From NCBI RefSeq assembly GCF_006345805.1, contig NC_043015.1, forward strand, positions 45,942,001 to 46,006,000: a DNA stretch of 64,000 nt, read 5' to 3'. A program made the translations under genes and the position numbers. The notes beneath the pieces are model-generated. The model was not told where the DNA came from, ran no database searches, and worked only from the letters and a program-made list of their open reading frames with translations. The stretch comes from Octopus sinensis. Taxonomy: Eukaryota. This document shows, piece after piece, positions 17,292 to 64,000 of this stretch (position 1 is the stretch's first letter; every line of letters begins with the position of its first letter).

Positions 17292-17592
17292 AGTCATGGC
17301 ATGGAGCTCTCCGTCGGTTGCGACGACGAGGGTCCCAGCTGATACAATCAACGGAACAGCTTGCTCGTGAAATAAACGTAAGTAGTTGAGCACTCCAGAC
17401 AAGTGTACCCTTAACATAGTTCTCGGGGAGATTCAGCATGACACAGCGTTTGACAAGGCTGGCCCTTTGAAATACAGGCACTACACAACATTTTTGCCAG
17501 CTGAGTGGACTGGAGCAATGTGGAATAAAGTGTCTTGCTCAAGGACACAACACGCTGCCAGGAATTGAACTCATGACCTTACGATCGCAAGC
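17292..17592 (-). mobile_element. SINE family D (cttgagcaagacact...ctccagtccactcagctgg)
   Basis: Reverse-oriented relative of the + copy at 22387-22640, which has a tRNA-like head. Confidence 0.6.
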
Positions 17593-35609: not shown

Positions 35610-35743
35610 AGATCGCACGGATACGATCCTCATTGTTCCATCACAAAGGAAACAGCAGGGAATCTTTACCCTTACCTGCATCAGATGGTCAAGCAGTCAC
35701 ATTATCACAGAAACTTTATGTACCTGTCAAAGAACACCCTGAT
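35610..35743 (+). CDS. QKI: quaking exon: end of QUA1, linker and start of KH ((E)IARIRSSLFHHKGNSRESLPLPASDGQAVTLSQKLYVPVKEHPD)
   Basis: Long T tract plus ctgcag acceptor (AG 35608-9), donor GAT|gtaagt, 134 nt, phase 1 to 0. Resembles HOW/QKI 'EISRVR...KLYVPVKEYPD'. Confidence 0.93.
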
Positions 35744-46887: not shown

Positions 46888-47004
46888 TTCAATTTTGTCG
46901 GACGAATATTGGGCCCACGAGGGATGACTGCTAAAGAACTCGAACAATACACAGGCTGTAAAATCATGGTACGAGGGAAAGGATCAATGCGGGACAAGGT
47001 AAAG
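46888..47004 (+). CDS. QKI: quaking KH-domain exon ([39 protein letters not shown])
   Basis: ttttcag acceptor, AAG|gtaagt donor, 117 nt, phase 0 to 0. GPRG loop and RGKGSMRD motif intact. Confidence 0.97.
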
Positions 47005-54241: not shown

Positions 54242-54385
54242 GAGGAGTTGAATCGGGGAAAGCCAAACTGGGAACACTTGAACGAAGAGTTGCATGTACT
54301 CATCACTGTAGAAGACACACGTAACAGAGCAGAAATCAAGTTACAGAAGGCTGTCGAAGAAGTGAAACGACTGTTGGTGCCAGCA
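54242..54385 (+). CDS. QKI: quaking KH C-terminal exon ([48 protein letters not shown])
   Basis: tatgcag acceptor, GCA|gtaagt donor, 144 nt, phase 0 to 0. Closely matches QKI '[25 protein letters not shown]'. Confidence 0.97.
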
Positions 54386-57300: not shown

Positions 57301-57555
57301 GAAATGGGTAAAAATGCAAAAAAAAAAACAAAACATTATTTTCTTTTTCCTACAAAGCAAAAATAATAGAGATTAGTCATTTGTTTGCTTGTATTAGATT
57401 TCTAAAACTATTGTTTAAGAATCCTGCAACAATTTTTATTACATGCTTCGAGGAAGGACTGTCAACTTGATTCCAAACATGTAAGTAAATCTATATTGTG
57501 TGTCATACACATATATACTCACACACATATGTACATATACATATGTATATATATG

Positions 57556-60898: not shown

Positions 60899-61287
60899 CT
60901 CTCTCTTTTACTCTTTTACTTCTTTCAGTCATTTGACTGTGGCCATGCTGGAGCACCGCTTTTAATCGAGCAACTCGACCCCGGGACTTATTCTTTTGTA
61001 AGCCCAGTACTTATTCTATCGGTCTCTTTTGCCGAACCGCTAAGTGACGGGGACATAAACACACCAGCATCGGTTGTCAAGCAATGCTAGGGGGGAGGAC
61101 AAACATACACACACATATACATATATATACGACGGGCTTCTCTCAGTTTCCGTCTACCAAATCCACTTACAAGGCTTTGGTCGGCCCGAGGCTATAGTAG
61201 AAGACACTTGCCCAATGTGCCACGCAGTGGGACTGAACCCGGAACCATGTGGTTGGTAAACAAGCTATTTACCACACGGCCACGCCT
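60899..61287 (-). mobile_element. SINE family A, full length; last obvious TE before the QUA2 exon pair
   Basis: Reverse complement of the consensus. Confidence 0.87.
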
Positions 61288-61664: not shown

Positions 61665-61688
61665 TACTAATTGTTCTTCGCTTCTAAT
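61665..61688 (+). promoter_or_regulatory. bipartite quaking response element / branch-point region upstream of QUA2 exon A
   Basis: TACTAAT (61665-71), 13-nt spacer, TAAT (61685-88): matches the NACUAAY-N(1-20)-UAAY consensus. Confidence 0.55.
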
Positions 61689-61718
61689 CACCCCTGCACC
61701 CCATTTGTTTTCTTTCAG

Positions 61719-61815
61719 CCTGAGGGGGAGGATGAACTCAAGAAAATGCAATTAATGGAGCTTGCTATCTTAAATGGAACTTACCGGGATTTCAAAACTG
61801 GTTCATCCATCCATC
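61719..61815 (+). CDS. QKI: quaking QUA2 exon copy A ([32 protein letters not shown]), putative mutually exclusive exon
   Basis: ttttctttcag acceptor, C|gtaagt donor, 97 nt, phase 0 to 1, open frame. Absent from the ORF track and read by hand. Confidence 0.92.
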
Positions 61816-61832
61816 GTAAGTTTGCTAAATAG

Positions 61833-61838
61833 TGCATG
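61833..61838 (+). promoter_or_regulatory. RBFOX motif UGCAUG in the 85-nt intron between QUA2 exons A and B
   Basis: Exact TGCATG 17 nt after A's exon end. Further copies at 62510-15 and 62707-12. Confidence 0.5.
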
Positions 61839-61900
61839 CTGTGTACATACTCTATTAAGTCATGTTCTTTACAACTGTGTTCCTTGTGATCCTTTTTCAG

Positions 61901-62015
61901 CCCGAAGGAGAGGATGACTTAAAGAAACGACAACTCATGGAGCTAGCTATCATTAACGGCACATATCGTGACACTTCTAAACCATCCGCCTCTGCAGCAC
62001 AACCTTCCTCCACCC
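61901..62015 (+). CDS. QKI: quaking QUA2 exon copy B (PEGEDDLKKRQLMELAIINGTYRDTSKPSASAAQPSST), putative mutually exclusive exon
   Basis: cctttttcag acceptor, C|gtaagt donor, 115 nt, phase 0 to 1. Lies within ORF 61862..62110. Confidence 0.93.
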
Positions 62016-62635
62016 GTAAGTTTGGGAAGTGCCGTGCAGTTTCAGCTGTGTGTCATGGTTTTTCTGACAGCTTAGAATTCACTCTAGCTGCACCTGCCCT
62101 CTTATCTTAGCCTGCAACTCTTTTTTTTTTTTTTTTTTTTTTCCTCTCTGTCTCTTCCGACCCCTTCTTCAAATTCCCCTTTTTTCACTCTCCTTGGGCT
62201 CCTCCTTGCCAGTCTTATTGCCTCGAAACATTGTCATTATTCCTGGCCCCCTTCTTCCCTCCCCCACTGCTCTTTTTCATTTCTAGGTTGATTTTTTGCT
62301 CTTTGAATTTGATTTGTTTTTGTTTTTTGATTTGACTTTTTTTTTTACCTGAATTTTTACCTGTAGAGATGTTCTCAGTGGAACAGATGCGATGACAATC
62401 TTTTATGAATTGCTTAGAACAATTTGATCTTTTTGAATTTGGGGAATGGTGGGGAGTTGAAATTGCTTAGTATATATAAGCTTAAACCTAAATCTGTGAT
62501 AATTTAATCTGCATGGGAGCCCTGTTATCGCATGTGTTATGTCTTGGAGTTGCCTCATCCAACAATCAATAGCCTTCTCTGGCTGGCTTTATAGTTCTGA
62601 TAGACTATTAAAATCTGTCTTGTGCATTTAGTTGC

Positions 62636-62675
<40 letters not shown>

Positions 62676-64000
62676 ACTGTGTTTCTAATCCAACCACAGG
62701 TTTGCTTGCATGCTAAAAACATGATTGTTCTTTCCTTTTTTTTTTCTTTCCTTTTTTTTTTTTTCCTTCAATTAAACCTAATTAATCGGGTAACATTCAG
62801 TAATCAATCACTTCAGGTGTAGTATTGAGGGTTTTAAATCATTTTGAAACCAATTCCAGGTTAATAATAATAGTTCTTATAAGGGTCTTTTTTTTTTTTT
62901 TGTTTCACCCCTCCCCAAAGGGTTTTAATTTGATGTTAGATTTTTCTCATACAATAAAATTGTCTGGTTTTCTTTGTCATTTTATAATGAAAAATTTAAT
63001 TAGGGTTTCTTTAAGCTTAATATTTCAAAAATTTCCCTTGGATGGTTTTTGTTATAAATATGTACTGACAGTAATGGTCAAAGAATCTGCCATAAACAGT
63101 GACTGAATTTGAAAAAATTACTGTATAAAACATCTTAAAGTTATTTTTAAGACATAAGCAAGAAAACTTGAAGTTTTCATTAGTAAAGCTAAGAGTGAAT
63201 TATTTTAAATTTAGATGAGCGAAAACTGATGGTTAGAGTAATCGCAAAATTGCCATTTTGCAACAGAATTTTGTTGTTTTCCTCATTAACAAGTTGTGGA
63301 AATGTGAAAATAAATGCTCTACATCAGTATTGAAATCCATTTGATTTGTATAGCTGAGTTGAATAGTTGTCGGATCACGTGGTTTCATGTGTTGCTGTGA
63401 AGATGATTTTAGGATTAACCCAATGAGAGCATCTCCCAGTAAGATACTGATGTAGATAGGTACGGGTATAATTGTGTAGTCAAGCAGTCTGCTTCCTACT
63501 GACGTGGTTTGGGTTCAGAACCATTATGCAGTACCTGGGCAAGTGTCTTCCATTATAGCCCTAGGATAATCAGATCTTTGTAGATTTTGATAAATGGAAA
63601 TTAAGAGAAGCCTTATGTGTGTGTGTGAGTGGAGTTCTTGGCATCAGGCAATAGATATGAGTGTCACTGTCATGTAAGCAGTGTCCTTGGTTTCTAATCT
63701 GACATGGACATATGTCAGGCCCCATGGGAAAATATTACATTGCTTGGAAACTACCAAAGGTCTTGATCCAAGGACCACCGCCTGAGAAAATCTGCCTCAA
63801 TGAATTTTGTCTAACTCATGCAAGCATGGAAAAGTGGACATTAAAATGATTTTATATAAAATGGTAGCTACTTGCTACCAGGACGAATAAATGGGTGCTT
63901 AACAAGTTTAATGATTAATATTTAATTCTTAAGGGGGTGAGCTGGCAGAACTGTTACCTGTGCCAGGTGAAATGCTTAGCGGCATTTTGCCCAATCTTCA

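Follow-up and report, generated by a model that had tools for sequence, protein, structure and literature searches.

Two alternative QUA2 exons in the octopus quaking/held-out-wings gene form a pair shared with other molluscs and an annelid

In glia, muscle and the germline, quaking and HOW proteins regulate splicing, translation and the stability of mRNA. Vertebrates, insects and nematodes appear to have a single QUA2 exon, as their isoform sets indicate. In the stretch of Octopus sinensis DNA analysed here (64,000 nucleotides; hereafter the window), two adjacent exons, A and B, each encode a QUA2 helix of this family, A with residues that recall vertebrate QKI and B with residues that recall insect HOW. 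Is the pair a relic of an ancestral one from which different lineages kept different copies, did exon A instead converge on the vertebrate state, and does the choice between the two exons alter the way in which the protein binds RNA?

The gene clearly belongs to the QKI/HOW/GLD-1 branch of the RNA-binding STAR proteins, and the window contains most of the octopus orthologue of quaking/held-out-wings. Coding exons were placed by tblastn with a QKI probe and by inspection of splice sites. Exon A matched the probe with E=8e-9 and exon B with E=3e-8 in the 64-kb window; given these values, and the KH exons that lie upstream in order on the same strand, the resemblance to QKI is not due to chance. 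The first coding exon, with most of QUA1, lies upstream of the window; QUA1 scores 81 bits against PF16544 in two Octopus isoforms, P0239 and P0171, which match the window in their other exons. Exons 46888-47004 and 54242-54385 encode one KH domain, of type I and with a GPRG loop (PF22675, 63.5 bits), and over the length of the helix both QUA2 exons can be aligned with QKI (4jvh) and GLD-1 (4jvy). The features of the locus are as follows.

35610..35743, + strand: coding exon that runs from the last part of QUA1 through the linker into KH (..EIARIRSSLFHHKGNS..KLYVPVKEHPD), from tblastn and splice sites; identical to Octopus RefSeq isoforms
46888..47004, + strand: KH-domain exon with the GPRG loop, from tblastn, splice sites, Octopus RefSeq isoforms and Pfam (PF22675/PF00013)
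54242..54385, + strand: last KH exon, ending ..VKRLLVPA in phase 0, from tblastn, splice sites and Octopus RefSeq isoforms
57445..57480, + strand: cassette micro-exon of 36 nt (ASRKDCQLDSKH), from tblastn with the Octopus RefSeq isoforms P0239/P0243
61666..61690, + strand: UACUAAU + 13 nt + UAAU element, from the sequence and a scan for ACTAAY
61719..61815, + strand: exon A, 97 nt, QUA2 helix with M and L and a short tail, FKTGSSIH
61816..61900, + strand: A–B intron, 85 nt
61901..62015, + strand: exon B, 115 nt, QUA2 helix with R and I and a Ser/Thr/Pro-rich tail, TSKPSASAAQPSST
62367..62395, + strand: coding part of an alternative short terminal exon (..Q MFSVEQMR stop), from O. vulgaris isoform X15 compared with the window

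Exons A and B alike have a pyrimidine tract, a cag acceptor and a gtaagt donor; exon B translates as PEGEDDLKKRQLMELAIINGTYRDTSKPSASAAQPSST. The last KH exon splices to A or B directly, or first to the micro-exon, which has a gtaagt donor and is preceded in the window by the dinucleotide AT, not AG. In RefSeq Octopus isoforms the micro-exon lies between KH and QUA2, lengthens the linker that joins them and combines with either A or B; its peptide agrees with O. sinensis and not with O. bimaculoides. The short terminal exon is joined directly to exon B in O. vulgaris isoform X15, a 221-residue protein that lacks the C-terminal region, and short isoforms in bivalves have similar ends (GMFSIVR, GMFPVVR). 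A second QKI-like paralogue of Octopus sinensis (P0114), annotated as KHDRBS1-like, has its own version of QUA2.

Exons A and B both start in phase 0, and their lengths are both of the form 3n+1. When A is joined to B the product reads RRRG-stop, with the stop five codons into B, while skipping both exons shifts the frame; consequently, only mRNAs that include one of the two are productive. The same frame rule is found in Tegillarca (A 97 nt, B 124 nt), Lottia (118/121 nt) and Dimorphilus (124/118 nt). Both octopus isoforms are already annotated by RefSeq pipelines. Exon A is matched exactly in O. bimaculoides X6 and O. sinensis X14, and B is present in O. vulgaris X15 and in many O. sinensis and O. 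bimaculoides isoforms which are otherwise the same as those with A. In a second cephalopod, assembled spliced transcripts contain either A only (L009) or B only (L010, L011), with junctions exactly as the window predicts. RefSeq pairs that differ solely in the QUA2 exon are found in the bivalves Ylistrum, Argopecten, Mizuhopecten, Crassostrea, Ostrea, Mytilus and Mya and in the gastropods Littorina, Gigantopelta, Babylonia and Biomphalaria, so that about 12 mollusc genera, Octopus included, have such isoform pairs. The octopus exons are a typical mutually exclusive pair derived from tandem duplication.

A few bivalve and gastropod gene models place both exons in one protein, and exclusivity may therefore not be strict everywhere. 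These models (P0131, P0133, P0134, P0138, P0139, P0147 and P0185) come from oyster, pearl oyster, mussel, Biomphalaria and Nucella. In them the two peptides are linked by a short spacer that begins with RK, which is what the gtaag donor gives when translated. Either such models represent isoforms that retain the intron and so have two QUA2 helices, or they may be artefacts of prediction.

The first-pass annotation had suggested that the pair could be very old, and this was borne out in other genomes. Exon A followed by exon B, with the same phases, is found in the ark clam Tegillarca granosa (a bivalve), where the A–B intron is 78 nt, in the limpet Lottia gigantea (76 nt) and in the annelid Dimorphilus gyrociliatus (229 nt), where A reads KKMQ..AIING and B reads KKRQ..AIING..RDTT. 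Since the arrangement occurs in a bivalve, a limpet and an annelid, the pair did not arise by a duplication in octopus. Over the 24-codon core, comparisons of nucleotides agree with this. Octopus B and Tegillarca B are identical at 90% of nucleotides and 79% of third positions, octopus A and Tegillarca A at 83% and 58%, while A and B within one species share only 67–72% of nucleotides and 29–38% of third positions. Third positions within a species are effectively saturated, which supports an old duplication with no later homogenisation. With A and B saturated, and A–A and B–B much closer, the case that had been named as fatal to an ancient origin, a duplication restricted to the octopus lineage, is ruled out.

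Because it is common to molluscs and an annelid, the pair would be more than 500 million years old. The annelid evidence comes from one species, Dimorphilus, in which exon B has intact splice sites and an intact reading frame, and no B-containing transcript was recovered from it. Between octopus and ark clam, exon B (61901-61987 against 17501-17587 of the Tegillarca locus, L001) has identical codons at 20 of 27 positions capable of synonymous change, whereas the two KH exons have 36 of 76; exon B also contains a 32-nt run, AACGGCACATATCGTGACACTTCTAAACCATC, that is identical in the two species. This synonymous conservation is a hint that selection may act on the RNA in addition to the protein.

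How far the resemblance of A to QKI and of B to HOW extends can be judged residue by residue. It had been noted from the octopus sequence that the cores differ at three positions, and exactly these (E/D, M/R and L/I) were found across 24 residues, of which 21 are identical (nucleotide identity 72%). The reference sequences given at that stage also proved accurate: exon A shares M and L with human QKI (structure 4jvh), and exon B shares R and I with the sequence of insects and other arthropods such as Bombyx, Rhagoletis and Tribolium, which is GEDELKKRQLMELAIINGTYRD. The octopus gene has the QUA1-KH-QUA2 architecture of vertebrate QKI (4JVH), with all RNA-contact residues conserved, and its isoforms share with QKI a C-terminal RxHPYxR motif. 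The helix of exon A is identical to that of QKI except at the S188 position; the QKI tail is, however, unlike that of A, in which a K is followed by hydrophobic residues. Arthropod HOW resembles B in its R and I and in a Ser/Thr-rich tail after RD, but has GEDE where B always has GEDD, and begins with A, T or Q where B begins with P. C. elegans GLD-1 and ASD-2 have the same STAR domain, with a helix that reads KRKQ..AIINGTYRP, and SF1 reads RKMQ..ARLNG. A and B differ most in the tail after the helix: that of A consists of 8 mixed residues, and that of B of 14 residues, Ser/Thr/Pro-rich, which start with T-[ST]-K-P, a beginning that the mollusc classes have in common.

Outside Lophotrochozoa, a second QUA2 exon was not found by tblastn (at least 22 bits) in the loci of a scorpion (Centruroides), a sea cucumber (Apostichopus) and a coral (Porites), the three genomic loci covered there. 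So small a sample would miss a second exon that had decayed, and also a pair in groups such as priapulids, onychophorans, hemichordates and brachiopods. At the same threshold one paralogue locus of the leech Helobdella has a single QUA2 exon. The intron phases of the QUA2 exon are conserved down to coral. All 15 listed amphioxus (Branchiostoma) isoforms have one version of QUA2, as do three isoforms of the horsehair worm Gordionus. In nematodes, functional diversity has come from separate genes, GLD-1 and ASD-2, and not from alternative QUA2 exons.

Further taxa, added by a search of 50%-identity cluster representatives, reveal how labile the two diagnostic sites are. At the M/R and L/I sites respectively, the 15 listed amphioxus isoforms have R and L, Gordionus (a nematomorph, and so an ecdysozoan) M and L, the dicyemid Dicyema M and L, the crinoid Antedon R and I, the sea spider Nymphon K and M, the tunicates Styela and Oikopleura K and I, the hemichordate Saccoglossus G and L, the nemerteans Tubulanus and Lineus R and L, and the flatworm Macrostomum K and I; M together with L also occurs in SF1. 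Across animals, M, K, R, L, V, Q, G and I all occur at the M/R site, and within mollusc exon A many gastropods have K there, with R instead in Pomacea and heterobranchs. This recurrence, across taxa and within molluscs, places the ‘vertebrate-like’ and ‘insect-like’ residues among the most changeable of the helix, and each combination has arisen more than once. The A exons of heterobranchs and Pomacea (P0182, P0186, P0251, P0258, P0256) have an A-type tail and a first half, PDGEDDLKKRQ, equal to that of B, as would be expected if B had partly converted A, or if the two had changed in parallel.

Other parts of the exons are more stable. The core GEDDLKKRQLMELAIINGTYRD is invariant in 17 of 17 tabulated B exons, while A varies at four or more positions. 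A polar tail of the B type (RD-x-x-K, with K 3–4 residues after RD) is the general bilaterian pattern, vertebrates included; B-like tails occur in nemerteans (RDTSKPS) and Macrostomum (RDTSKK). The best reading of these comparisons is that B has stayed conservative while A has diverged, and they point to the A tail, with its K and hydrophobic residues, as a novelty.

With respect to RNA binding, the published contacts of QKI QUA2 are K190, Q193, L194, L197, A198, T203 and Y204, and GLD-1 uses K313, R314, Q316 and L320 in the same way, while its D310 stabilises the KH–QUA2 interface. Mutagenesis of GLD-1 has shown that QUA2 tunes affinity and forms a pocket for the 5' uracil. All of the published QKI contacts, their GLD-1 equivalents and D310 are identical in A and B. 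The M/R site was expected to adjoin the RNA-contacting K and Q, and it does, being M192 of QKI, between K191 and Q193. M192 and L200 of QKI, and K315 of GLD-1, the equivalent of M192, are not mentioned in the papers searched. By helical periodicity (100 degrees per residue), M192 would be turned about 200 degrees relative to K190, towards the side of the helix away from the RNA, and the L/I site (L200) would fall at the edge of the RNA-facing arc. With the contacts identical and the main difference in the tail, tuning is favoured over a changed motif specificity: A and B would differ in affinity, domain packing or regulation, and not in the RNA motif that they read.

The M/R substitution might nevertheless itself be the switch, the positive charge beside K190/K191/Q193 altering RNA affinity or specificity. 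The site does lie between RNA-contacting residues in QKI and GLD-1, exchanging neighbouring basic residues changes the affinity of GLD-1 11-fold, and R is invariant in all B exons. Against this, neither QKI M192 nor GLD-1 K315 is a listed contact, the side chain at M192 should point away from the RNA face, the site accepts eight different residues across animals, and even within gastropods A exons carry K or R. We consider this explanation unlikely. Of the functional switch originally proposed for this site, the adjacency to contacts has held, and the switch is weakened by the identity of the published contacts in the two exons.

Two other explanations concern the origin of the pair. If it had been present in the bilaterian or protostome ancestor, vertebrates would have kept the A type, arthropods the B type and lophotrochozoans both, as the M and L that A shares with QKI, the R and I that B shares with HOW, and the likeness of the B tail RDTSKP to arthropod RDSS.K, barnacle RDSSKPP and brittle-star RDNTKPQ would suggest. 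The single exon at the scorpion, sea cucumber and coral loci, as well as that of the leech paralogue, and the single version in amphioxus do not fit such retention of different copies, and nor does the recurrence of the diagnostic residues in Gordionus, Dicyema, SF1, Antedon, amphioxus, nemerteans and Nymphon. B always has D where arthropods have E, and vertebrate tails (RDANIKSP) follow the polar pattern of B and not that of A. Neighbour-joining trees of the exon peptides, built from the core and from core plus tail, were unresolved and uninformative, and no node with 50% or more of bootstraps united A with vertebrates or B with arthropods. Such an ancestral pair is, in our judgement, very improbable. 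Its stricter form, in which the pair predates the protostome–deuterostome split, A is orthologous to the QKI exon and B to the HOW exon, and independent losses occurred elsewhere, is highly improbable; if true, lophotrochozoans would preserve an ancestral two-mode QUA2 switch. The other suggestion made at the outset, that A converged on the vertebrate state, fares better in so far as convergence or retention at labile sites fits the data better than differential retention. Residue matches at two labile sites here mimicked deep orthology, which is a caution for the method. Conversely, molluscs and annelids might each have duplicated the exon, with the shared M-then-R arrangement arising in parallel. 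Tandem exon duplication is common, A of Dimorphilus has I and not L and a quite different tail, its A–B intron is 229 nt as against 76–85 nt in molluscs, and a sturgeon gene model with two tandem QUA2 copies indicates that such duplication can recur. Yet exon order, phases and the M of the first exon are common to both phyla, the second exon in both consists of the core GEDDLKKRQLMELAIINGTYRD followed by T-[ST], and a further lophotrochozoan-like lineage, represented by two species about 88% identical, has A- and B-type transcripts with the same signatures; parallel duplication is accordingly very improbable. The sturgeon model (P0003, quaking-A of Acipenser ruthenus) has two identical QUA2 exon peptides about 20 residues apart, and is either a recent vertebrate tandem exon duplication or an assembly artefact.

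The explanation that we prefer, to which we assign a probability of roughly 70%, is that the exon was duplicated in the lophotrochozoan stem, that one of the two copies is included, that B is conservative and A divergent, and that the difference between the isoforms is a tuning centred on the tail. After the last KH exon the octopus pre-mRNA takes exactly one of two tandem-duplicated exons, each of which supplies a QUA2 helix and the linker that follows it. The duplication would have preceded the split between molluscs and annelids, most likely in the lophotrochozoan stem. B would since have been almost frozen, keeping its polar RD-x-x-K tail and its R/I state, while A would have changed in its tail and at the labile sites. 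The match of A to vertebrates (M, L) and of B to insects (R, I) would then reflect recurrent change and not shared descent from a bilaterian pair. The differences between the isoforms would fall on the rear face of the helix (M/R), on the C-terminal edge (L/I), on the N-cap (E/D) and, above all, in the tail, with the proposed effect of tuning affinity, packing or regulation, for example through phosphorylation of the B tail.

As to what enforces the choice of exon, frame incompatibility is the sole means shown. Steric hindrance across the short A–B intron is possible: this intron is 76–85 nt in three mollusc classes (85 nt in octopus), while neighbouring introns reach kilobases. In the octopus A–B intron the best branch-point candidate is TTTAC, some 29 nt before the acceptor; its distance from the donor, about 56 nt, is probably far enough for splicing. 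Competing RNA structures were considered and set aside, with no inverted repeat conserved across octopus, Tegillarca and Dimorphilus. In these three species GGAACUUAC of exon A is able to pair with the exon's own gtaagtt donor, the codons GGA ACT TAC being U1-like where exon B has ACA TAT. The donor-pairing regions (61777-61822 of the window, 17382-17432 of L001 and 4826-4896 of L003) fold no better than shuffled sequences, however (z of -0.28, -0.84 and +0.87 for octopus, Tegillarca and Dimorphilus), and Lottia A uses different codons; the hairpin was rejected.

The UACUAAU of the element at 61666..61690, 29–53 nt upstream of the exon A acceptor, is probably a branch point, and the whole element, UACUAAU..UAAU, also fits a bipartite QKI response element. 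QKI is known to repress exons with ACUAA branch sites through competition between QKI and SF1, so that autoregulation is conceivable. It was nonetheless rejected as a candidate, as the position of the element is not conserved in Tegillarca or Lottia and ACTAAY is not enriched in the window (58 sites found against 96 expected from dinucleotide-preserving shuffles of the whole window, both strands). The two strands are depleted of ACTAAY to a similar degree. In Lottia it is exon B that has such motifs upstream, ACUAAC and CUAAC. Two inverted copies of a repeat element, at 61168-61214 and 63536-63582, are 74% complementary over 47 nt; A, B and the short terminal exon lie between the two copies, which could base-pair with each other in the pre-mRNA. 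The element is probably a SINE, and no tRNA gene was detected in it.

Similar arrangements are known from other genes. The muscle myosin heavy chain clusters and exons 4a/4b of OGDH likewise consist of adjacent homologous exons with compatible phase and a short intron; they too are deeply conserved, and each swaps one structural element. Unlike these pairs, A and B swap the RNA-binding helix of a regulator of splicing and translation, and neither a distal branch point nor competing RNA structures were found for them. Within the family, the well-studied vertebrate isoforms QKI-5, -6 and -7 vary at the C-terminus and not in QUA2 as the octopus isoforms do. A full-text literature search found no paper on alternative QUA2 exons in quaking or HOW.

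The known isoform diversity of quaking and HOW sits at the C-terminus, whereas here the QUA2 helix and its linker are swapped. A lophotrochozoan superphylum would have kept this QUA2 switch for more than half a billion years. The pair amounts to a natural mutagenesis experiment, in which the known RNA contacts are held fixed while the back face of the helix and the tail are varied, and it points to a regulatory layer of STAR proteins that is as yet unstudied.
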